Positions 35,238 through 55,667 of a stretch of 64,000 bases of DNA are shown in pieces. Under the pieces are notes generated by a model. That model was not told the origin of the DNA, did not search any database, and worked only from the letters and a program-made list of their open reading frames with translations. Each line of letters opens with the position of its first letter. The first letter of the stretch is position 1. The stretch is from assembly GCF_963676685.1 (NCBI RefSeq), contig NC_092351.1:44020001-44084000 (forward strand), written 5' to 3'. The DNA is from Mytilus edulis. Taxonomy: Eukaryota. The translations under genes and the position numbers were made by a program.

Positions 35238-37414
35238 GTAAATTAAAGTTAATATATATACACTAAGGCCCTAAAAGGGGTGGGGGTGGGGGAAGGGGGG
35301 GGGGGGGGTTACTATGAATTTACTGCGATTTTTATTTCAAATTTCTAAATAAGTTATGATACACATTATAACACAATTACTTAATTACTTAGTCCATGAA
35401 TTTAGACTTAAAATAAAATATATATATAATACAATTACAATAGGGATAATATAACTTTATTCCCCAAAAAGCATATGATAAATCAAATCAAATTTGGGTT
35501 AAATGTACCTGCTTTGAGTCTATTTTAAATCAACTAATTTGTTTTCTTGAAACATGAAACATGAAACATTTCATTACACTAAAGGCCTCTCATGAGGCAT
35601 GATAGTACAACAATATAACAAATAAGATATAATGCATGAACAAACATATTTACAAATGCATGAATAAATGGGAAGGTAAATATCATTTGTAAATTGACAT
35701 TACAATTTTACAGAACTTGGCTAAGCCAACAAGAACAAATTTATCTTTGCTGTTCATTAAATTGGAGAAACTCATAGTATTTTTAACTTTACAAATTCTT
35801 ATTTTACTCAAATTTGTATAAGAGTTACCTCCCATTCAATATAAAAAAAATCAGATAAAAAATCAGATTTGGCGTAAAAGAGCTGGGACATAAGATACCA
35901 AAGGGACAGGAAAACTTGTAAATCGAAAATGAACTGACAACGCCATGGCTAAAAAGAAAAAAGACATACAGAAATAATAGTAAACATGTCATAACATAGA
36001 AAACTATAGATTAAGCAACACGAACCCCACCAAAAACTGGGTGTGGTCTCAGATGCTCCTTAAGGGTAAAACAGATTCTACTCCACATGTGGCACCCGTC
36101 TCAATGCTCAAGTTATTATTAATCCGGTAAATGGTCTAATTCGGTAGGCAACATTCGTGAAAAGGGAAGGGTTGTAGTTATGGCATGAGGAACATATCAG
36201 ATATCATCTGTGAAACGGTTATAGGACACATTTCTAAAACTAAATACTTTATTGATGATTGTAGCCAAATGTCGTAAAATTTGAGCCAGCAGTTTTTTCA
36301 GGAAAAATCTTTTTTTTTTAATTTAACAGAGGACGACGACGGACGACGGACGACGGACACAAAGTGCTGAGAAAAGACCACTGGCCCAATGGTCCAGGGG
36401 ATTTAAGAGAAATGTCAGACCCAATCCTGACTCTCATATTCACACTAAAGAAACATTAATACATCTGTTCAAACAGAAACACAAATAACGTACGTTAAAT
36501 TACATGCTTGTCTGTACTTACACCAGTTAAACCGTTTACCATACTCGGAATATGGATCGAATAGGATATTACCACAATACATCCCTTCAGTTTCATAATC
36601 TACATAAACATAACAAAGACAGTGAGACAACTAGTTATTTTGAGCAAAGCGATAAATATGATGAACATCTGTTATCTTATACTTCAAAGTTCAATCATGA
36701 TAATGAATATGTGTATTTTCGTCGACCTATAATAACTTTTTATCAATTGAAATTAGGGGCAATATGAGTGTTTCTATTGAAATGTTTAAAAAACAGAAGT
36801 TTATCATGATACTGTAATGAGGGTCTAAATGTGCGTTATCGTGTGTTATATCTACATGACATTGTCTAATCTGAAAACAACATTGAAACCTAGCACGACC
36901 ATTGACGATTGCTAAATAACATGAATAAATGGAGCACAAGACGTAACATTATAATTGCATCTTGGTTTTTTTTCCAACCAGTTTAAGTAGAACAACCAAA
37001 CAGTGTCCAGATGAAATCCTTACTCGTCATTAAAAGAGATTCAAGACAAATATTAAAGTGCCACTTCCGCAGTAAACACAATCTACCCACACATGTTTGA
37101 TGTTATCAAATATTTGTTAAACATATTTTTGACACTGTTGGTGGAATCCCCCCCCCCCCCCCCCCCCCCCCGAGGGTATCACAAGCCCAGTAGTTAGCAA
37201 TTATGTGTTGAGTTGAGCTCTCATTAATATGTTCATAATTATAAATTGACTGTTTACAAAACTTTGAATTTTTGAATTTCTAAGGCTTTTCTACCTCCTC
37301 AGAGTCTACCTCAGGAATAGATTACCTTTATTAGCTGTATTTAGAAAAAACTTTTGGTCCTCAATGGTCTTCAACTTCGTACTTTATTTAACCTTTTTAA
37401 AAAAATTTATTCGA

Positions 37415-37458
37415 GCGTCACTGATGAGTCTTTTGTAGACGAAACGCGAGTCTGGCGT
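37415..37458 (+). ncRNA. Minimal type I hammerhead ribozyme
   Basis: Stem I GCGTCA/TGGCGT; core CTGATGA; stem II GTCT-TTTGT-AGAC; GAAA; short stem III AC-GCGA-GT; cleavage triplet GTC. Confidence 0.85.
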
Positions 37459-40400
37459 AAATATAAATTTTCAATCCTGGTACATATGATGATTGTATTT
37501 GCAGTTGTCTCCCTTCTAATAACAACTAATCGATACACAGAAGTCAGATAAAAACATATGCAGACGACCGTCGAAAAACATATAATATATAAGTGTTTAC
37601 AAACATTTTGGTAAAACAAAATTATACATTTGCTGCACGCGAGGGTGGATTTACGTAATGAGTACACAACATTCAAAACGAATGGAATCTTCTTTTAATT
37701 ATGGTAAGAGTTAAACTGTTTACATTTATCATGTTTATAGTTAGTGCATCAACCATGTGTATTGATTTTAATTAGTAATGCGAAGATAATATAATCATGC
37801 GATGGGAAAAGTCATTCGAATTTATTATTCATAATCAATTAACTTGTATATAAAACACATGGTTTTCGAGGGGTTGAATTCATTATTGAGTATGATTGCT
37901 TCGCGAGTCAATGTAAATTCCCCCCTTGTATTTTCCTTACTACAGGCCGGAGTTTTACGCATTTTTCCTTTAAAATTAAATGCTAGGAAAATTCCTACGT
38001 AATCAAAATTGATCGACACTACATTATTTTATGAAAGAAGCTTTAGAAGTTTTATGCAATTTGATTACATGCAATCTGTTTAGCTCATTCAGTAATGCTA
38101 TAAAGATAAATCATTCTATTTTTACAGAAAATACATTATTATGTTAACAATATCAATATAGAGAATATACGTAAATTATACCAAGTCTTCTCGCAACAAC
38201 CACATTATGTTCGTATGTGAATGCTAAACATTTCAATATGTGCATGCATGCCTTGATATCATATGTTTGTTTGAACTATTGGATTTAACTTTTGTGTTTC
38301 GGTCACATGTATATGTATAAAATAAAAAAAAATTAAAACTTTTAATACGTCATTTCTATACGTATTAAAAGTTTCCAGCACTTTCAGACTCTTCATTCCG
38401 GCTGTAGGTTAGTATAGAAATATTTTATGTTTACGACACGTAATCTTGATTCCCGTAAGACTGTGGGTATTTTAAATATTTTGTGCAGTATAAAATCAAA
38501 CCCTTTCATCCGTTTCCTCAACATATGATGGGAGTGACGATTTCTACATTTTGTTTACATAGCGATGGAAGTCACATGACAGATAAAACTCAAGGCAGCT
38601 CACCGGAACTCCCGTTTTGTTATACTAACATCTTTTTTTTATGTGTTTTGAAATGCATTTTTTGTATTATTTCATTTGATCTGTTAAAAGCTGATGTTTT
38701 CAACTGTCTCGTATATGCCAAATTTAAATAAAGCTTGTATGTCTTAGAGCTGTTTGCTGTTTGCTAAACGAAAAAAAAGGGGTTCTTTAAAATTGATAAA
38801 TCAGGATGGGAAGAAGACTTTTGGACTTACACTGAACAAATGGGTAGGAGTGAAATTATGGCCTAGAAACCCCAAAAAATGTTGATCCCAATGATCTTCT
38901 GTAACAAAACAAAAATACTTAAATGCCATGATATGGCTTTTTTCACAAATTTGCAGACTAAAAATGTTCGACTTAATTTCAGATGAATATAAAAAAAGAA
39001 GATGTGGTTTGATTCCCAATGAGACAACTATCTACCAAAGGTCAAATAAAGTGGATGTAAGAAATTGATGACAACTGTACGGTCTTAAACAATGAGACGA
39101 AGTCCATAGTCGGCTATAAAACCCCAGACATGAACAATATGAAAGAAAAAATCAAGTGAGAAAACTAGCGGGCTTATTTTGTAACAAAACAATTTACAAA
39201 AAAAACCCCACAAATATGACAGATGTGAACCAGAGACAACTACTGAAACTTTAGACTCCTGTCTTATGACAAACTTAAAAAAAATAGGTGGGGGTAGACA
39301 TGTATGTGAGCTCTTAATCCTCCCCCAACCTGGGACATTGATGTAACAGCACAAGACCAGAACACACTATAAAAAGCAGTTGAAAAGGGTTGAACTCAAA
39401 AGATCGAAACAAAGAAAATCAATCATCAAAAACACAGTCGAAGGATGTGGGAGGGTATATATCCATCCTTCGTCCGTAACAACACTTTGCTAATGTTTTG
39501 TGTTGCATGCATTTATGAATAAGACCAAGTGCAAAAGTCCTTAACATTTTGACTTTCAATTTTAATCCCTTCGCTCAAATGTTGCGAACATTGTAGACCT
39601 GAAATTTGACCATATATATAACATACATACATGATTGACAAGTAAGAAATATCAAAATAAATAGAAGAATTTACTTTATTGTCAACTTTTGTGAAACTTT
39701 ATCGTAACGTTACACGGTTTGACGTCGATTTGCATAAGGTCGATTTCTATCCGACGCGGCTCATATAGAATAGAAAATAATGGGGTGCAAAAGTATAAAG
39801 TATAACCATAGAGGTATAATCAAAGGTTCATACATCTATGTTTATACATCTATGTGTATACATCTATGTTTATAGCTGTATAAGCATACATGTATAAACT
39901 TTGAATCTTTTTTATTAGACGAAACGCGCGACTATAATCCTGGTATCTATGATGAGTTAATTTAAAACCAATGGGTCGATGCAACTACTGGTAGAGTTTG
40001 AATTCCCCGAGGGTATCACCAGCCCAGTAGTCAGCATAGAAATGAATTTATCATTGATATGGTCATATTTGTGATATTGATATATTTGTATTTTTTGTCG
40101 AAAATAGTTATTTAGGTAAACTTAGTGAGTATCCGTTATATAACAATCATTTGCAAATCGAGTTGTAAATGCATCAAAACATTATTCAATGCAAATACCA
40201 ATTATTAAAAAAGCGAATAATGATATTAATTGATATATTTGAAATTCTTGTTTTCAAATTGGCCATCATCCAATATAGCCACCAGTACTTCAATATCCAA
40301 AGTCCTCAGATGATAGTCTTTGTCATTAGTGATTACTCTACCAAATACGATCAAAAAACTGGTGAAGCTATTAATTATTTTTGTGATTTCTGTTGATTGA

Positions 40401-43400: not shown

Positions 43401-45352
43401 TAATATAACTTTATTCCCCAAAAAGCATATGATAAATCAAATCAAATTTGGGTTAAATGTACCTGCTTTGAGTCTATTTTAAATCAACTAATTTGTTTTC
43501 TTGAAACATGAAACATGAAACATTTCATTTCACTAAAGGCCTCTCATGAGGCATGATAGTACAACAATATAACAAATAAGATATAATGCATGAACAAACA
43601 TATTTACAAATGCATGAATAAATGGGAAGGTAAATATCATTTGTAAATTGACATTACAATTTTACAGAACTTGGCTAAGCCAACAAGAACAAATTTATCT
43701 TTGCTGTTCATTAAATTGGAGAAACTCATAGTATTTTTAACTTTACAAATTCTTATTTTACTCAAATTTGTATAAGAGTTACCTCCCATTCAATATAAAA
43801 AAAATCAGATAAAAAATCAGATTTGGCGTAAAAGAGCTGGGACATAAGATACCAAAGGGACAGGAAAACTTGTAAATCGAAAATGAACTGACAACGCCAT
43901 GGCTAAAAAGAAAAAGACATACAGAAATAATAGTAAACATGTCATAACATAGAAAACTATAGATTAAGCAACACGAACCCCACCAAAAACTGGGTGTGGT
44001 CTCAGATGCTCCTTAAGGGTAAAACAGATTCTACTCCACATGTGGCACCCGTCTCAATGCTCAAGTTATTATTAATCCGGTAAATGGTCTAATTCGGTAG
44101 GCAACATTCGTGAAAAGGGAAGGGTTGTAGTTATGGCATGAGGAACATATCAGATATCATCTGTGAAACGGTTATAGGACACATTTCTAAAACTAAATAC
44201 TTTATTGATGATTGTAGCCAAATGTCGTTAAATTTGAGCCAGCAGTTTTTTCAGGAAAAATCTTTTTTTTTAATTTAACAGAGGACGACGACGGACGACG
44301 GACGACGGACACAAAGTGCTGAGAAAAGACCACTGGCCCAATGGTCCAGGGGATTTAAGAGAAATGTCAGACCCAATCCTGACTCTCATATTCACACTAA
44401 AGAAACATTAATACATCTGTTCAAACAGAAACACAAATAACGTACGTTAAATTACATGCTTGTCTGTACTTACACCAGTTAAACCGTTTACCATACTCGG
44501 AATATGGATCGAATAGGATATTACCACAATACATCCCTTCAGTTTCATAATCTACATAAACATAACAAAGACAGTGAGACAACTAGTTATTTTGAGCAAA
44601 GCGATAAATATGATGAACATCTGTTATCTTATAATTCAAAGTTCAATCATGATAATGAATATGTGTATTTTCGTCGACCTATAATAACTTTTTATCAATT
44701 GAAATTAGGGGCAATATGAGTGTTTCTATTGAAATGTTTAAAAAACAGAAGTTTATCATGATACTGTAATGAGGGTCTAAATGTGCGTTATCGTGTGTTA
44801 TATCTACATGACATTGTCTAATCTGAAAACAACATTGAAACCTAGCACGACCATTGACGATTGCTAAATAACATGAATAAATGGAGCACAAGACGTAACA
44901 TTATAATTGCATCTTGGTTTTTTTTCCAACCAGTTTAAGTAGAACAACCAAACAGTGTCCAGATGAAATCCTTACTCGTCATTAAAAGAGATTCAAGACA
45001 AATATTAAAGTGCCACTTCCGCAGTAAACACAATCTACCCACACATGTTTGATGTTATCAAATATTTGTTAAACATATTTTTGACACTGTTGGTGGAATC
45101 CCCCCCCCCCCCCCCGAGGGTATCACAAGCCCAGTAGTTAGCAATTATGTGTTGAGTTGAGCTCTCATTAATATGTTCATAATTATAAATTGACTGTTTA
45201 CAAAACTTTGAATTTTTGAATTTCTAAGGCTTTTCTACCTCCTCAGAGTCAGGAATAGATTACCTTTATTAGCTGTATTTAGAAAAAACTTTTGGTCCTC
45301 AATGGTCTTCAACTTCGTACTTTATTTAACCTTATTAAAAAATTTTATTCGA

Positions 45353-45396
45353 GCGTCACTGATGAGTCTTTTGTAGACGAAACGCGAGTCTGGCGT
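45353..45396 (+). ncRNA. Minimal type I hammerhead ribozyme (duplicate copy)
   Basis: Identical to 37415-37458. Confidence 0.85.
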
Positions 45397-46416
45397 AAAT
45401 ATAAATTTTCAATCCTGGTACATATGATGATTGTATTTGCAGTTGTCTCCCTTCTAATAACAACTAATCGATACACAGAAGTCAGATAAAAACATATGCA
45501 GACGACCGTCGAAAAACATATAGGCCTAGTTCGATCATCAACCGTAGTTACAGTGGTGAAACCAAAGTGTGATCGAACTAGCTCTGGTTCGACTAAAGTG
45601 ATGTCAGCGCCCGACTAGGGTTCAACCATTTGAAAGCGTGGGTTTCTCTGGATCCAACATGGCGACATGAGGTGAGTTTGTCCAATTGTCAATATTGAAA
45701 AATGGGGAAATGTTTTTATACAGTAGACAATTAGTATTACAAAGAAGTAGAACTGATACCAGAAAACACATAGCGAACTAAGATATGTTTGTATGGAAAA
45801 TAAATGCGTTTTCGTTCGGAAAATAAGCATGATAGACTTCGCATATTCCGAGTGACATTGATTTTCGAGAACGATCTCTCTTAAACCATGTTACATTGTA
45901 GGTAGTTCTACAATATATGCCTTTGCAATATCTTTGCCCTCAGTCAAGTCCATGAGGGGGGGGGGGTTGGACAATCAATGCATTTGAATGGGAGCATATA
46001 GTTGGAACCCCCCTCTCCCTTTACTCTGGGTTGGGAACCCCCCATTTTTAAAATGGCTGGATACGCCCCTGGAGTCTGACGCCTATTAACACCATTACAA
46101 CTGAGCCTTTGAAGACGTCATAATTATTTGGACTAACTCGGTATATGCCTATTTCTATCGCTTATTATAGTAGACTTATTATTCTTTATTAGCTCTTGAC
46201 TCATAGGGCGCATACCTGTAGCCAGGGGGTTTGGGGGAACCCCCCCCCCCTTGAAAACAAATAAGCACGTTTAAAGGCAATGTTTTGTTCGAATTGTGAC
46301 TGTTAAAGTCAAGTTTGTGAGTCCAGCCACTCTAACTCAAGACTCATTAAATCCATGAAAAGTGAATTTCTCTTGTTATTATCAAAATTCTGCAACATCA
46401 ATATATTTTTTTTCAG

Positions 46417-47486
46417 ATGGAATCAAAACTAAGCCAAATGCAAAAGTGGACTTGCTTCATTTGCCAAAAACCTCCACTGAGTATTGAAAGTCTGGAACGT
46501 CAAGAGAAGTCGGGTGTCATCATATATATTGATTGGGATTACAGGTATGAATCTGTCTATCTGTATGTAACACAAAAAATATATGTATACAATTAATAGT
46601 TGTTACTGAGCTAATAGTCATTACGGTTGCATATCACATTTCTACAGTCATGATAAGAGAACAAACATTTAATATTCTAGGGGGAGCCAGGATTTTGTTT
46701 CAGATGAGTTATTTATACATGTACTTTTTTTTTCTAAGCTGGTTGTATTTATTTTTCATGGCTTTGCCGCACAATTATTTTCAAACAACTGAATCCTGTA
46801 TTTTCCTAGTATATGGGGGACAGAGTTTTCATTTTCATCCTGCTATTTCCAGTTATTGGCAGGCTCATTACCAGTTCAAAATGTTGGTATATTTTTAAAA
46901 TTAAAATATATATATATTTACATATAAATAAATAAATTTTCCCATTTCAATAATGACAATTAGACAAACTCACCTCATGTCGCCATGTTGTACTTTCAAA
47001 CAAAATGCACAAAGGTACACTTTTGATCATGATGATTCTTTATCACAATTTATGCACAATTCTGATTACTAGTAGTCACTACATACATTTGTGTAACACA
47101 GCTCAAGTTCGAAATTGGGGTGTTGTAACTGTTATTGTTCTGCCCCCGTTTAAGATGTTCGTACATGTAAGCAGGGTCATCTGTGTCACATAAACACATT
47201 CTCCATTTATTCTTATTTCCTGTTTTCATCTTATTTTACAAATGGAGAACATGACTTTTTATGAATGAGGTGGTCCATTGCATCAATTTATTTTATCTAA
47301 CAAAAATGTGTGTTTGTAGCATAGTTTTAAACAGAATTTCATTTTTATTTTAGGTCAATTTTGAGGTGTTCATCGTGCATGAATTGTTTTCACGCTGATT
47401 GCGCAAAGTTTATAGATCTTCTTGAATTTTTCAACACTAAAGAAATACAAGTTGTAACTTGTGAACCCTGTGCAACAGCAAACTAA
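46417..47486 (+). CDS. Predicted 86-aa PHD-finger protein (exons 46417-46544 and 47354-47486) inside the Harbinger
   Basis: Canonical GT-AG splicing gives MESKLSQMQKWTCFICQKPPLSIESLERQEKSGVIIYIDWDYRSILRCSSCMNCFHADCAKFIDLLEFFNTKEIQVVTCEPCATAN*, a C-x2-C...C-x2-C-x4-H-x2-C...C-x2-C pattern. Confidence 0.75.
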
Positions 47487-48325
47487 GGTACTTGTACTTT
47501 ATTTAGACACAATCTTGTTGGTAATGTCTTAAAAATGTAGTGACGTAAACTTCAACTTGTTGAAGGCGGTTATTATATAGTAGAAATGTCAAAACACAAC
47601 TTTCACTATAAGAATATCAGCATCTGAAAGGCAATTTATAAGGAACATGGCAACATTAAAAAAACACAACAATGAAAGGAAAACAATGATCCAAATTTAG
47701 ATTTGAAGCTAATGTAAATCATAGAGATACAAATTCTTAACAGAAACTACATAGAATAGATACAAATTATTATTGAACAGTGTTTTTATTTCTGTTCTTC
47801 ATCTTGAAAGTCACTGTAGAATCTTAAACAATGAACGAATCATTCATATACCAGTCATCCAGTATATATCAAATTTGAGATGTAACACTCTCTTCATACA
47901 AAAAGAAAAGTTTTGATAAGACTTAAAAGGCAATATACCGAAACTCAAAGTTGCAGTGTAAATATACTGCACACCAAGTTAAAACATGGACGGTCATAAT
48001 TTCCAAGACACTGTGATTAGGATAGTCACACACTAAATGTGTTCAAACAAAAAATTATAAAAAAGCAATATCCTTTCATATATATATATATATGAGTCTG
48101 AAAATTACACCAAACAGTGTTAGAGTTAGATTTTCTGCTGACAAATTTTGTCCGTATATATAAAGTCTGAAAATTACACCAAACAGTGTATGTATATATA
48201 TAAATGTTAAGATCTACAAGGCACTTAATTGAAGTACTCTGGTCATACCATTTGCTATGTTCTGGTTGTGAATTGATTTTGATTTATTCATTACAAAATG
48301 ATAACTTTTATCAATATGTTGTAGA

Positions 48326-49598
48326 ATGAAGACAATTATAATGAAGTCAAAGACAAAGGAAGGGACAGACTACAAATTGCAATGTACTGATGACATTGCC
48401 AAAATTTTGCTGTCTAAAGACACAGGTATATAAGTTAGAATTTAAAATCTTCAATGTTGATTTAGATATTTAAATATCCAGTGGAATAAAAAAAAACATG
48501 AAAGTTGTGTTAAAACTCCTTATCCAATGAATTTTCATTAATAGTTTTGTGCTATATTCACTTAATCCACAAAAAGAACTGTTCATTTTCAATCACGATT
48601 TGTTACATGTTTTTCGAGGAAGTTTCTGTGACCTACATTTTACCCTTTATTGACCTAGGTTTATCCTATATTTTGCTGATTTGTGATAAAATACTACAAG
48701 ATTTCCATTGGTTTCTATGTGCCCCAAATTATCTATGTTATTGTGATCATTGATATCTTTTTTTTTTTCAGACCCGGCTGTTAAAGAAATTATAGTCAAT
48801 GGCCTTATGCCATTAGCACAGGTAGATATGCACTCTAATACTTCGCCAGATGATATGGCATCTGCATCATCATATCACGCAAATACACCATCTACATCAT
48901 CATGTAACCCAGACACACCATCTACATCATCATGTAATGCAGAAACACCATCTACATCATCATTTAATGCAGACACACCATCTACATCATCATTTAATGC
49001 AGACACACCATCTACATGTACTAGTAGCACCAGTAATATTCATCTTTGGACAGACAAACAAGAAGATATGTTAGTTCATTTAAGACATGAAAGACATGAT
49101 GCATTTGGTAAAACCCGAAATCACAATACATTATGGAAAGACATTGCAAACGAAATTAATAGCACTTTCAAATGTAACATTACTGCAACCCAAGTGATGA
49201 ACAAGTACTTCAATCTAAAAAAGAGATGGAAAGAGGTACTTGATGGTGCAAGAGGGTCAGGATCAGAGGCTAAATATTTCAGGCTAAAAGAAGATTTTGA
49301 TCAACAATATGGCACAAAGGCCAGTAGCAGACCTGCCTATCTGCTTGATACAATTGCAGATAAAGATAAAAATAAAAACGCAAAAGAAACGAACGAAACT
49401 GAAAATCCAGCATCAAAAGTTACCAAGGGACAGGGAGAAGATGGAAAAGGGAAAAAAAGAAAAAGTACAGATGTTGTTTGTCTTCTTGAAAAGCAAAACA
49501 CTGATTTCATGAATAAAATGGAAGAATTCCATAAAGACAAAATGAACAGATTTGATAAACTGCTCGATCTTTACAAAAAAGATCTAGATCGTAAATAA
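48326..49598 (+). CDS. Harbinger Myb/SANT-like (trihelix) DNA-binding protein, 308 aa (exons 48326-48425 and 48772-49598)
   Basis: Motifs WTDKQEDMLV...LWKDIANEI...QVMNKYFNLKKRWKE; phase-1 intron CAG|GTATA...TTTCAG|AC; 30-bp TPSTSSxNAD repeats. Confidence 0.88.
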
Positions 49599-51649
49599 AT
49601 GATTGAAAGAAATGGGAAATATTTTTACCTGTTACAGAATTTATTAATTTTAATTTCCTTGTGTAGAATGAAGGAGAACCTGTCATGCCAGTCGTATTAT
49701 TATGTTATTATTTGATAAACCTCAGGGAGAAACTCTGTTAATATAGTACAATAAATGTACGTTGTATTTAATTGTTAAGGAAAATATTTACATTTGAATT
49801 ATAATTTCTTTCTAGTCATATTTTCTAGTTAAATAAAGACTTATAAGGAGACTCATGGGTTTTACATGTTTAAATCTTTCAAAATTATTGGCACTTTATT
49901 ATTTTTCTTATTGTATAAAAAAAAATGGATAGAAATATAATTTGGCAAATTCAATTAAAATCTTATATATATTATATCGAATGTTTCAATTGTCTTTGAA
50001 ATATCAATGAAAAACAGTTAAAATCTGTATTAAATGGCTTTTCATGCTCCTAAATGACTCTTTATTGAATACGGAAGTCTAACATGTAAATTTTTGAAGG
50101 AGTTCCTATTATTTTGTTTTTAGATTGTTTTACTAGTGAACCTCTTTAAATGTAAGTTAGCATGCTGAAATACATGTATTATTCCCATTCATTTAGCTAG
50201 CTTGGTTAGGTGAATAAGATTTTTTGATGAGCATAATATATTTGTTTGTTATATGCTGTTTATTTTAAATTTACCATAAAGAAAATGGTTGTTTTTGATT
50301 GAATGTTTTATTTTTTTATGTTACAATAAAATCTGTTGAAAGGATGTTTAAAACTAGTATAACCTGCCATATTCATGTGTGTCTGTCCTTAGCAAAAAAT
50401 CTTTGTTGTTGTTTTACCTGACCGAGTTAGGGTAAGCTTTTGCAATCATTTTGCGTCTGTTGTCGGTCTTTAAACCTTTTGTGCATAACCTACAGTAGGA
50501 AATTGGCATTTTGTTTTCTGATATGTGTGTCCGTCTGTCACAGGTCAGGTCACATTTTTTGGTCAAGTTAGTTTAAAAAGAAATAAAAGTCACATCAACT
50601 TACTTAGTACACATGTTGATTTAAATGGGATTTTTTTTAATTCTATGCCAAATAACGGTCTAGATCCCAATTTTATAGTTCACTTAACTTCGAAATGTGA
50701 GTGCAAAAAACTTGATTTCAAGTTACAGGTTTTGGTCAGGTAGCTATAGGTTATTGTGAAATAGAAGTCACATCAACTTGAAACTTGGTACATATGTTTC
50801 TTGTGTTGAGGTCTTTCTTCATTGTATGCTGATATATTGGATTGGCAACGGTTTTACTGTTCACTAAAATTACATGTGAAAGGTAGTTAATAAAAAAGTA
50901 CATTTTCAGTTGTAGTTTTTGGTCAGATTAGTTTATAATGATGTTCATATTACATATATCATGATGTGATCTTTCAGAATTGTAGGCTCAATTTAGGTTT
51001 GTACAACGTTTTGAACATAGAAATTAAAATTGTGATTTGCCGATTTGTCTCGCCTGAAACATAAGGATAATGATCTGGTGTGCCCATTCTTGTTACTAAA
51101 GAATGATGAAGTTTTTTTTCAGAAGGTAGACGACCTGGATGTATACTTTGTATATATACTAGTATATAGATGCGTTATGTTACAATGTTTCTTTCTGTCA
51201 TACATGGCATGTTCATTTGCATTGACCTTGACCTCATTTTCCTTGTATGGTCTATTTCTCAGATACTACTATAAGCAGTCCATTTATATTTGGTGTATTG
51301 AATGGTTGAAAGTTATAAATGTCCGTCTTTCAGTAATCATCTGACCTAATTTTCATAATTTATTGGTCAATTTAATCTTTGGTGTGGTTACTTGTAACGC
51401 GTACATGTCTGTCTGTCTAATAATGCCAAGACGTATGTTTACTTGACCTTATTCTATGGTTCATTTGTCAAACTTCAGTTAACAAGATTATACTATAGAA
51501 CATAAATATTAAGAAACTTTCCCTGAACCTAATAGAAATTAAAGTAATTGATACAGAAAATAGTATTTTATTTAAACAGCAACAGATTTATTTGCATGTA
51601 TCAGAATTACACAATATACAAACATCCAATGTAATGTTAATTGTAAAAT

Positions 51650-53329
51650 CTATGGTATATTAACAAGCTGTAAACGCCTTAGAACACCAGCATGTCCATT
51701 TTGGTAAACATTTGGAAAGTTATTGGGATCTTCTTCCTCATATTCAATGTATCCTTCAACATCATCCTCATTAATAATACACAAGTTATGTAAGACGCAA
51801 CAAGCAATAATAAGATTGCAAACTTCTTTATGATCATGAAGAGGCACATCTCTGAGTCTGCGAAATCGCCCTTTAAGATGACCAAAGGCTCTTTCAACTG
51901 TTTGTCTCACACCTGATAACCTTTTGTTAAATTTAATTTGTTGCCTTGTCAGATTTCCAAAGTTCTTAAATGGCGTAACTAACCAATTACGAAGAGGATA
52001 TGCATTGTCCCCGAAGATGTGATAATTTTGTGAAAATAGCTCGCCAGCTTCAGCTTTGATGTATACACTTGAGTTTCTTAAAACGCGTGCATCATGCACA
52101 CAGCCTGGCCATCCGGTGTAGGCATTAATGATTTTCATATTGTTGTCCACCACTGCCTGCAAAACATCAATGAAATAATCATGTAAATTAGAATAAAGAA
52201 TTAAAAACTGTTAAAGAGACAACAACTTTACCAAAGAAAAGAAATGTGTAAGTTGTTAATTGCATAAAAACTTTGGGACCAACCAATGAGCCTGAAGGAA
52301 GACATGACAAAAGTCTTAATGGAAGTTGTAATCGGTTGGATGAAAATCAGAAACCCCATATACAAACATCTTTGTACATGATTAAACTTTACTTCAATTA
52401 AAATTTGTATAGCTACTAATGAAAGATCTGTGATATGTTTTACCTGCAACTGAATAGATGGATACCCTTTTCTATTATAGTAGTCCCTTTCACCACCAAT
52501 AGCAGCTGACAGTCGAATATGTGTACCGTCTATGAAACCTGTCACCCCAGGCAAAGAGCATACTGCTTCTACCTCAGTTGCGATTTCTGTTTGTTGTCTA
52601 GGTGATGGCCAACGAATAATCTAAAAAAAAAACCACATGTTACATTATTAGCATTTGATTATATTGTTTAAATTGTAGATACCAATTCAGAAATATGCTA
52701 TGGTTACTAATAACTATGGTTACTAATAACTAACCTTTTCCCCCATAAATCGGCTAAAAATTGTAAACAAGATGTCAAGAATTAAGAATAAGATCAATTA
52801 AAATTTTCTAGCGCAATATAGTACACCAAAAATAATATGGTCCAGAGTTAGTTTTCCTAGGTCACTGACATTTTCTTACCCTATCACGCAGATTAACCAG
52901 AATATTACACACTTCTTTAATGATCTGATGCACTGTCGACTTCGACAGATTAAAGAAATGTGCAGTTTCCCTCATAGACTGGTTTGTCGCTAAATAGCTG
53001 ACACATACTAGAAGCTGTTTCTCTGGGGTGACAGTGTCATGTGGCCCCCTTCCTCCTCGAATTAATAAGTCTTGAACGCTTTCCAATATGATATGAAAAA
53101 CATCTCTGCTGATGCGGTAATGCATTTTAAAATCATCTATGTGCTGAGGGACCGCCATTTGTCCGACTACTGCCATGTAATCCGTCACTTTTGGCATGAA
53201 ACTTCTTCTGGTCGTCATATTAATCACACTTAATGTATTTATTGATCTCTTGGCAAGCAAGCGATGAATATCTTCGTCTTCGTCATCAAACATTTCCAAT
53301 ATACACATTTTTCGTAAAAACGCCGCCAT
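51650..53329 (-). CDS. Harbinger (HARBI1-like DDE) transposase, 377 aa, exons 53329-52880, 52620-52444 and 52156-51650
   Basis: Two phase-0 GT-AG introns join an uninterrupted frame with IIRWP, FIDGTH, YNRKG, WPGCVHDARV, GDNAYPL, VERAFGHLKGRFRRL and ACCVLHN. Confidence 0.95.
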
Positions 53330-55667
53330 ATTAACTTACTAAACTGGTACCAAAGTTAGTTCGATTATTCAATTAACCAGACATGCGCACTAATACCAAC
53401 AAAACTAAAGTATGGTTGGTGATCGAACTAGGCCATAATATATAAGTGTTTACAAACATTTTGGTAAAACAAAATTATACATTTGCTGCACGCGAGGGTG
53501 GATTTACGTAATGAGTACACAACATTCAAAACGAATGGAATCTTCTTTTAATTATGGTAAGAGTTAAACTGTTTACATTTATCATGTTTATAGTTAGTGC
53601 ATCAACCATGTGTATTGATTTTAATTAGTAATGCGAAGATAATATAATCATGCGATGGGAAAAGTCATTCGAATTTATAATTCATAATCAATTAACTTGT
53701 ATATAAAACACATGGTTTTCGAGGGGTTGAATTCATTATTGAGTATGATTGCTTCGCGAGTCAATGTAAATTCCCCCCTTGTATTTTCCTTACTACAGGC
53801 CGGAGTTTTACGCATTTTTCCTTTAAAATTAAATGCTAGGAAAATTCCTACGTAATCAAAATTGATCGACACTACATTATTTTATGAAAGAAGCTTTAGA
53901 AGTTTTATGCAATTTGATTACATGCAATCTGTTTAGCTCATTCAGTAATGCTATAAAGATAAATCATTCTATTTTTACAGAAAATACATTATTATGTTAA
54001 CATTATCAATATAGAGAATATACGTAAATTATACCAAGTCTTCTCGCAACAACCACATTATGTTCGTATGTGAATGCTAAACATTTCAATATGTGCATGC
54101 ATGCCTTGATATCATATGTTTGTTTGAACTATTGGATTTAACTTTTGTGTTTCGGTCACATGTATATGTATAAAATAAAAAAAAATTAAAACTTTTAATA
54201 CGTCATTTCTATACGTATTAAAAGTTTCCAGCACTTTCAGACTCTTCATTCCGGCTGTAGGTTAGTATAGAAATATTTTATGTTTACGACACGTAATCTT
54301 GATTCCCGTAAGACTGTGGGTATTTTAAATATTTTGTGCAGTATAAAATCAAACCCTTTCATCCGTTTCCTCAACATATGATGGGAGTGACGATGTCTAC
54401 ATTTTGTTTACATAGCGATGGAAGTCACATGACAGATAAAACTCAAGGCAGCTCACCGGAACTCCAGTTTTGTTATACTAACATCTTTTTTTTATGTGTT
54501 TTGAAATGCATTTTTTGTATTATTTCATTTGATCTGTTAAAAGCTGATGTTTTCAACTGTCTCGTATATGCCAAATTTAAATAAAGCTTGTATGTCTTAG
54601 AGCTGTTTGCTGTTTGCTAAACGAAAAAATAGGGGTTCTTTAAAATTGATAAATCAGGATGGGAAGAAGACTTTTGGACTTACACTGAACAAATGGGTAG
54701 GAGTGAAATTATGGCCTAGAAACCCCAAAAAATGTTGATCCCAATGATCTTCTGTAACAAAACAAAAATACTTAAATGCCATGATATGGCTTTTTTCACA
54801 AATTTGCAGACTAAAAATGTTCGACTTAATTTCAGATGAATATAAAAAAAGAAGATGTGGTTTGATTCCCAATGAGACAACTATCTACCAAAGGTCAAAT
54901 AAAGTGGATGTAAGAAATTGATGACAACTGTACGGTCTTAAACAATGAGACGAAGTCCATAGTCGGCTATAAAACCCCAGACATGAACAATATGAAAGAA
55001 AAAATCAAGTGAGAAAACTAGCGGGCTTATTTTGTAACAAAACAATTTACAAAAAAAACCCCACAAATATGACAGATGTGAACCAGAGACAACTACTGAA
55101 ACTTTAGACTCCTGTCTTATGACAAACTTAAAAAAAATAGGTGGGGGTAAACATGTATGTGAGCTCTTAATCCTCCCCCAACCTGGGACATTGATGTAAC
55201 AGCACAAGACCAGAACACACTATAAAAAGCAGTTGAAAAGGGTTGAACTCAAAAGATCGAAACAAAGAAAATCAATCATCAAAAACACAGTCGAAGGATG
55301 TGGGAGGGTATATATCCATCCTTCGTCCGTAACAACACTTTGCTAATGTTTTGTGTTGCATGCATTTATGAATAAGACCAAGTGCAAAAGTCCTTAACAT
55401 TTTGACTTTCAATTTTAATCCCTTCGCTCAAATGTTGCGAACATTGTAGACCTGAAATTTGACCATATATATAACATACATACATGATTGACAAGTAAGA
55501 AATATCAAAATGAATAGAAGAATTTACTTTATTGTCAGTCATTGAAGTTGTGTTGCTTTTTTTATTAGTCATATGTATATATTACAATTTACATGCATAA
55601 AAGAACAAAGGTAAGGAGCAATTTTTCCTTCGTATATATATGCTATAAACAAAGTTATCCATTGCAG

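Follow-up and report, generated by a model that had tools for sequence, protein, structure and literature searches.

In this study, a window of 64,000 nucleotides (nt) of Mytilus edulis DNA (contig NC_092351.1, positions 44,020,001 to 44,084,000 of the forward strand; coordinates below count from its first letter) was analyzed for the gene layout of a PIF/Harbinger DNA transposon. A frame of 86 codons for a small zinc finger and a frame of 308 codons for the Myb/SANT-like partner protein of the transposon lie in tandem on one spliced RNA, and the stop codon of the first stands 2 nt ahead of the start codon of the second. The initial annotation of this DNA had proposed a polycistronic messenger RNA in the form of a stop-splice-start chain, in which a three-codon frame (MAT*), a PHD frame and a Myb frame follow each other and splicing sets each stop next to the following start. 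Coupled termination-reinitiation or leaky scanning was suggested there as a possible control of the ratio of PHD to Myb. Two of the three links of this chain were recovered in RNA. The joint presence of finger and Myb frames on one spliced RNA was borne out, and the MAT* exon as the first link of the chain was not supported.

Finger and Myb frames on one spliced RNA

The splicing evidence was taken from the assembled contigs of two public RNA runs, X1 and X3, which belong to two separate studies, carry a sister species label and derive from another copy of the element. These contigs behaved as RNA, with joined forms that had GT..AG ends and with a contrast in depth between exons and introns. 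Depth was 41–103 on the Myb exons and 0–10 on the introns, and it was exactly 0 over 47571–48071 in both runs. Three joints, all with GT..AG ends, were present in both X1 and X3: 46544^47354 within the finger frame, 47487^48325 between the last finger exon and Myb exon 1 (depth 65.9 in X1 and 43.6 in X3), and 48425^48772 in the Myb gene. The full exon chain was assembled from several contigs. Contigs lose rare variants, and RNA starts are not visible from them. In X21 and X24, raw RNA reads covered the exons too thinly to show joints.

The joint between the two frames was carried by one contig of 334 nt, which reached from the last 28–30 nt of finger exon 2 across the entire Myb exon 1 to 206 nt into Myb exon 2. 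The depth of this contig equaled that of the Myb exons. It began about 30 nt before the joint, a distance equal to the assembly word of 31 less one, and this start was read as an assembly fork between spliced and unspliced forms. The contig was unbroken at 48325, which indicates that other leaders are not commonly joined to Myb exon 1. The letters around the joint were as first described (TAA G|GTAC at 47484–47491 and tag|A ATG at 48322–48328), and the predicted splice with its TAA-GA-ATG order was found in the contigs of both studies. Because the joint is present in RNA, the mature RNA reads UAA-GA-AUG.

Other features were observed in and after the intron between the two frames. A 26-nt direct repeat with two occurrences was located at 48072–48189. 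RNA reads in this intron piled up to 48149 and then continued into tRNA-like letters, as if the intron held a fragment of an abundant transcript resembling a short interspersed nuclear element (SINE). Downstream of the Myb frame, the raw X21 reads over 49742–50242 had a depth of 15–48, with all first mates on the + strand, fixed differences and a common loose end at 50155. These reads derive from another copy or a related element.

The first link of the proposed chain gave a different result. The letters were again as described, with ATG GCG ACA TGA G|GTGAGT at 45659–45677 and the finger ATG at 46417 directly after a pyrimidine run and cag. The joint 45671^46417, which would give TGA-G-ATG, was absent among the joints of the X1 and X3 contigs, in which a minor spliced form could be lost. 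A single contig led from an unlike flank into the left terminal inverted repeat (TIR) at 45522 and past the donor to 45899, with a depth of 30.5 in X1 and 25.7 in X3. At the other end, a contig of X3 that began at 46282 crossed the acceptor, continued in finger exon 1 and passed the next splice, and its span 46282–46546 was unbroken at the acceptor. The unique parts of the supposed intron 1 matched finger exon 1 in depth (25–36, against 0–10 for true introns). The expressed copy retains the mini-frame ATG and the donor GT, as no difference was listed there. Donor and acceptor are thus read through at exon-like depth, which leaves TGA-G-ATG unsupported, and this order is probably not the main RNA form.

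The flank of the expressed copy was a repeat with 279 matches in the genome, and the RNA in the sampled material begins outside the element. One arm of an inverted repeat of 46 nt contains the mini-frame and its donor-like site; the repeat brackets finger exon 1 and is kept in two further copies of the element (copies B and C). The predicted energy of the RNA duplex of the two arms was −70.5 kcal/mol, and one idea is that this pairing masks the MAT* donor. Inside the supposed intron 1, high-copy repeat pieces with G/C runs were found at 45967–46071 and 46211–46325. These pieces had dozens of matches of 90–93% identity on all chromosomes, and RNA depth over them exceeded 1000.

The zinc-finger frame and the start of the Myb gene

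The finger frame is split by one RNA-confirmed intron, and the reading frame is kept across it. Its ligands Cys13, Cys16, Cys48, Cys51, His56, Cys59, Cys79 and Cys82 follow the C4HC3 order, which is the ligand pattern of PHD fingers. The spacing was C-x2-C-x31-C-x2-C-x4-H-x2-C-x19-C-x2-C, with an unusually long first loop of 31 residues. The finger shares the ligand order with the PHD, C1 and RING fingers, together with weak matches to PHD_2, PHD_4, C1_1 and RH_dom; it differs from them in the long first loop, in the lack of an aromatic residue before the seventh ligand, in its sub-cut-off Pfam scores and in having no homologue. In the ESM Atlas, the nearest clusters included PHD and RING, with all scores below 0.9, and this was used as a lead only. 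Judged by its sequence, the finger is of the cross-brace type known from PHD, C1 and RING domains, with C4HC3 ligands. The label "PHD" of the initial annotation was right in the ligand order and too firm in view of the Pfam scores, and "PHD-like" is the better reading.

Selection on the finger frame was estimated by comparison of the window copy with copy C. Five synonymous and two non-synonymous changes were counted, where about one in five changes would be expected to be synonymous. The ratio of non-synonymous to synonymous rates (dN/dS) was about 0.09 (Fisher p 0.003; binomial p 0.03 under a lenient null; n = 7 changes), and that of Myb exon 2 was 0.41. In finger exon 1, three bases of copy C were changed and the protein was identical; these changes are synonymous solely in the finger frame. 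A search of the own genome for a host parent gene of the finger found none. The frame probably encodes a real, lineage-restricted zinc-finger protein.

The closest proteins were those of Mytilus galloprovincialis and M. edulis, and homologues of the Myb protein were found in Mytilus, Saccostrea and Pinctada. The RefSeq model P0002 of M. galloprovincialis begins with MKTIIMKSK, which corresponds to the ATG at 48326. The first methionine of the Saccostrea protein P0004 aligned with the Myb methionine, and the alignment ended at the same exon boundary motif. P0007 begins with the same residues. By these alignments, the Myb start at 48326 is old.

None of the Myb homologues carried a PHD domain. 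The initial annotation had counted homologues with a single fused PHD-Myb frame as evidence that would speak against it. No true fusion was found, and fused forms appeared as M. edulis gene models only. P0003 fuses the finger to the Myb protein by skipping finger exon 2 (46544^48325, in frame), and P0011 does so through a 71-nt mini-intron at 47408–47478 that bypasses the stop. Both joints were absent from the X1 and X3 contigs. These entries, named "unnamed protein product", were taken as automatic gene models made for a single frame. Within Myb exon 2, five tandem units of 30 nt at 48859–49047 encode a decapeptide repeat rich in serine and threonine; genomic copies vary in how many units they contain, as do the Mytilus proteins P0001 and P0002.

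Possible translation routes of the Myb frame and rival explanations

In the preferred explanation, the Myb partner gene is transcribed into a spliced RNA with the finger frame followed by the Myb frame, and both frames would be translated from this one RNA. Some ribosomes would pass the finger's three in-frame AUGs, which are weak, and reach the Myb AUG (leaky scanning), and some would restart at the Myb AUG right after the UAA (reinitiation). Finger and Myb proteins would be made together, with more of the finger, which may assist the Myb-transposase complex by binding chromatin or proteins. A two-frame spliced RNA from which both proteins are made would be the best explanation as a whole, with an even chance of being correct. 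The reading of two proteins from one RNA is plausible, and the balance for it is close to even as well.

The finger exons contained three ATGs, all in frame and with C, C and T at position −3. No out-of-frame ATG was present in these exons, where 3.4 would be expected (P 0.03), and the base at −3 of the Myb ATG is A. Weak upstream AUGs, the lack of out-of-frame AUGs and a better downstream AUG are the features of leaky scanning, yet 18 ATGs precede the finger AUG in the observed RNA. The AUG pattern fits leaky scanning at least as well as reinitiation, and coupled reinitiation would be one of these two live mechanisms. In viruses, ribosomes can reinitiate behind a long frame if no more than about 20 nt separate its stop from the next start (PMC10275272). 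The stop-start spacing of 2 nt on the same RNA fits this rule for long-frame restarting. A stop codon with an exon junction 100 nt downstream should mark an RNA for nonsense-mediated decay. Translation of the Myb frame would spare the RNA from this decay and would tie the fate of one frame to that of the other.

Several results weigh against translation of both frames. The leader before the finger AUG was at least 895 nt long in the contigs, held 18 ATGs and started outside the element, which makes a poor setting for scanning-based translation of the finger. Reinitiation was examined through TURBS (termination upstream ribosome-binding site), an RNA element that holds the 40S subunit and was sought as UGGGA no more than about 90 nt away from the stop. 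No such motif was found within 90 nt of the UAA or in finger exon 2; the only TGGGA in the finger exons was at 46534, 136 nt before the stop. Restart after 86 codons without UGGGA-type aid is usually inefficient. In the Pfam scan, in which the exons were scored one by one, the finger reached 18.6 bits for PHD_2 (cut-off 28) and 14.6–16 for PHD (cut-off 24), and the matches to PHD_4, C1_1 and RH_dom were also below their cut-offs. Finger exon 2 had no homologue among 1.84 billion representative proteins. The 51-residue open frame around this exon gave no candidate among proteins of 28–89 amino acids in a collection of 5.8 billion clusters. In the genome, the finger was confined to three to four copies of its own element family, and the selection test is weak with seven changes. 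The RNA contigs stem from another copy under a sister species label, and the exon chain was pieced together from several of them.

Part of these results would also suit an upstream open reading frame (uORF). The 86-codon frame, which may be two captured and decayed exons in a long leader, would then have lower Myb translation as its sole effect. Such a frame would agree with a finger that lacks homologues in protein collections and passes no Pfam cut-off, with the ATG-rich observed leader, with a tiny element family of one full-length copy and with exons and introns that diverge alike between copies. The position of the stop beside the donor would also follow from a T in front of the donor consensus AAG|GT. 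The protein side of the frame is harder to reconcile with a uORF. Eight zinc ligands in the exact C4HC3 order with three C-x2-C pairs are very unlikely by chance, and the frame survives across an RNA-confirmed intron. The 5:2 ratio of synonymous to non-synonymous changes and the lack of out-of-frame ATGs in the finger exons also speak for a coding role. The uORF was judged somewhat unlikely.

Two other explanations concern the RNA forms. The Myb protein may come mostly from separate RNAs, with transcripts starting in or near 47488–48324 or with other leaders; the joined form would then be a minor or read-through product of an outside promoter in the sampled copy. The sampled RNA indeed starts outside the element, in a flanking repeat, and the depth of the finger exons (20–36) was below that of the Myb exons (41–66). 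Against this, the contig of Myb exon 1 continues into finger exon 2 with no break at 48325, and depth was zero over 47571–48071 in both runs; separate RNAs were judged quite unlikely. Alternative splicing may also make finger-Myb fusions, and the two-frame RNA would be one isoform among several. The routes would be the joint 46544^48325, used by P0003, or the GT at 47408 spliced onto 48325, which by the coordinates would keep the frame and give a fusion. Both routes are frame-preserving, P0011 steps over the stop, and both X3 contigs over finger exon 2 stop at 47409. No such joints were present among the X1 and X3 contigs, however, and the fused M. edulis entries were taken as automatic models. 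The fusions would contain a partial finger each time, with two ligands by the first route and six by the second, and the Saccostrea and RefSeq proteins begin at the Myb methionine. Fusion by alternative splicing was judged very unlikely.

Translation of both frames from one RNA can also be given a more complete form. The transposon would have a third protein, a chromatin-reading zinc finger, and the ratio of finger to Myb would be fixed by translational coupling across an exon junction. Solely ribosomes that end the finger frame or skip its AUGs would make Myb, and the restart would shield the RNA from decay. Taken with all its parts, this proposal is unlikely.

The element, its copies and known systems

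The element is a full-length PIF/Harbinger DNA transposon of 7,912 bp at 45523–53434. Its transposase, on the − strand, matched Pfam DDE_Tnp_4 (PF13359) with an E value of 1.3e-31 and HTH_Tnp_4 with an E value of 2e-6. The Myb/SANT-like gene, on the + strand, matched Myb_DNA-bind_4 (PF13837) with an E value of 1.2e-12, which exceeds the family cut-off. The two genes converge within the element. The element is bounded by 27-nt TIRs with 89% complementarity, and the triplet ATA at both ends is the 3-bp target duplication. Copy B is flanked by AGT on both sides. The ATA and AGT triplets differ from the often-cited TWA. The features are listed in Table 1.

Table 1. Coordinates of the features of the Harbinger element in the window.
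Feature	Position	Strand	Evidence or remark
Left target duplication ATA	45520–45522		Same triplet 3' of the right end
Left TIR	45523–45549	+	Inverted-repeat pair; in RNA contigs of another copy, an unlike flank takes over exactly at 45522
Mini-frame ATG GCG ACA TGA, followed by G and a GT resembling a consensus donor	45659–45673	+	Donor use not seen in contigs
Left arm of 46-nt inverted repeat, with mini-frame and donor-like site	45655–45700		96% complementary to 46945–46990
"Intron 1" of the initial annotation	45672–46416	+	Present in RNA contigs at exon-like depth; 15 ATGs; two high-copy repeat pieces
Finger frame part 1 (42 codons and 2 nt; Cys13, Cys16)	46417–46544	+	Donor joint 46544^47354 in X1 and X3
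GT..AG intron inside the finger frame, with the right arm of the inverted repeat (46945–46990)	46545–47353	+	RNA contigs
Finger frame part 2 (Cys48, Cys51, Cys54, His56, Cys59, Cys79, Cys82); TAA 47484–47486, one base before the donor	47354–47487	+	Joint 47487^48325
GT..AG intron between finger and Myb frames	47488–48324	+	RNA contigs
Myb coding exon 1; ATG 48326, one base after the acceptor, A at −3	48325–48425	+	Homologue starts
GT..AG intron of the Myb gene	48426–48771	+	RNA joint with 100 nt on the shorter side
Myb exon 2, Myb/SANT-like domain; TAA 49596–49598	48772–49598	+	Pfam, homologues
Myb 3' untranslated part; AATAAA 49832–49837	49599–49867	+	End of X1 RNA contig at 49867
Transposase gene, three open blocks (53329–52862, 52554–52228, 52162–51650)	51650–53329	−	Pfam
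Right TIR, then ATA 53435–53437	53408–53434	−	Inverted-repeat pair

The copies were searched in the own genome of 1.37 Gb in 14 large pieces. The window copy was the sole full-length copy, and the others were copies B and C and a few fragments. Copies B and C are non-autonomous and lie on contig 11, at 12838614–12844176 and 60929524–60935731. Copy B had about 95% identity and was without 49502–51978; copy C had about 92% identity, was without 49806–51707 and had a truncated left end. Both have lost the middle of the element, with the 3' ends of the two converging genes, and have kept the finger exons and the element ends. The lesions of copy B were a change of the mini-frame ATG to CTG, of the first donor GT to TT and of the third acceptor AG to AA, together with a TAG in finger exon 1. 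In copy C, the second acceptor AG was changed to AA. Divergence between the copies was similar in exons and introns, and the copies are young. Diverged Myb-like pieces on contig 11 were short and decayed, without finger or transposase. All own-genome DNA matches extended into the flanking introns, and none was confined to exons.

The Rfam scan gave no match inside the element. Outside it, a match to the type I hammerhead ribozyme was located at 45353–45396 on the + strand, with 27.5 bits, less than the gathering score of 34, and an E value of 0.002. This match lies 130 nt outside the left end of the Harbinger, in a dispersed repeat of about 190 nt (about 45249–45440). Thousands of first-look candidates of this repeat were found genome-wide, and a copy with 97% identity is present at 37286–37532, 7.9 kb upstream.

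Harbingers are textbook two-gene DNA transposons that have repeatedly donated chromatin-linked genes to their hosts. The canonical PIF/Harbinger has two protein-coding frames (PMC9392472). The mussel element shares with canonical Harbingers, such as Harbinger3_DR of zebrafish, the DDE_Tnp_4 transposase, the separate Myb/SANT-like protein, short TIRs and the 3-bp duplication. Unlike their two frames, it adds a third, small zinc-finger frame on the Myb RNA, directly before the Myb start. In full-text literature searches, neither a PHD frame nor a bicistronic Myb RNA was found described for any Harbinger. Text matches to "PHD" in two papers were to the academic degree, not the domain.

Termination-reinitiation couples ORF1 and ORF2 of some retrotransposons without long terminal repeats. 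After a long frame, it is known from calicivirus VP1/VP2, influenza B M1/BM2 and the UAAUG of hypovirus CHV1 (PMC10275272). The mussel RNA shares with the viral cases a stop-start gap of a few nucleotides on one RNA and an upstream frame too long for uORF-type restart. It differs in that no TURBS-like motif is in the usual place, that the stop-start pair is created solely by splicing, and that it belongs to an animal DNA transposon. Polycistronic messenger RNAs translated by leaky scanning are widely reported in green algae and fungi. These share with the mussel RNA the weak upstream AUG, the lack of out-of-frame AUGs and the better downstream AUG; the mussel RNA differs by two further in-frame AUGs in the way and by an AUG-rich leader.

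If the finger frame is untranslated, what is left is an ordinary case, a transposon gene behind a long leader that is spliced. If both frames are translated, the finger, encoded by a chromatin-reader-like frame, would be a new kind of accessory factor for the Harbinger superfamily. The two-frame RNA would then count among the rare examples of an animal DNA transposon expressed in the manner of an operon, and the stop-start pair made by splicing would offer a natural system for long-frame restarting in animal cells.

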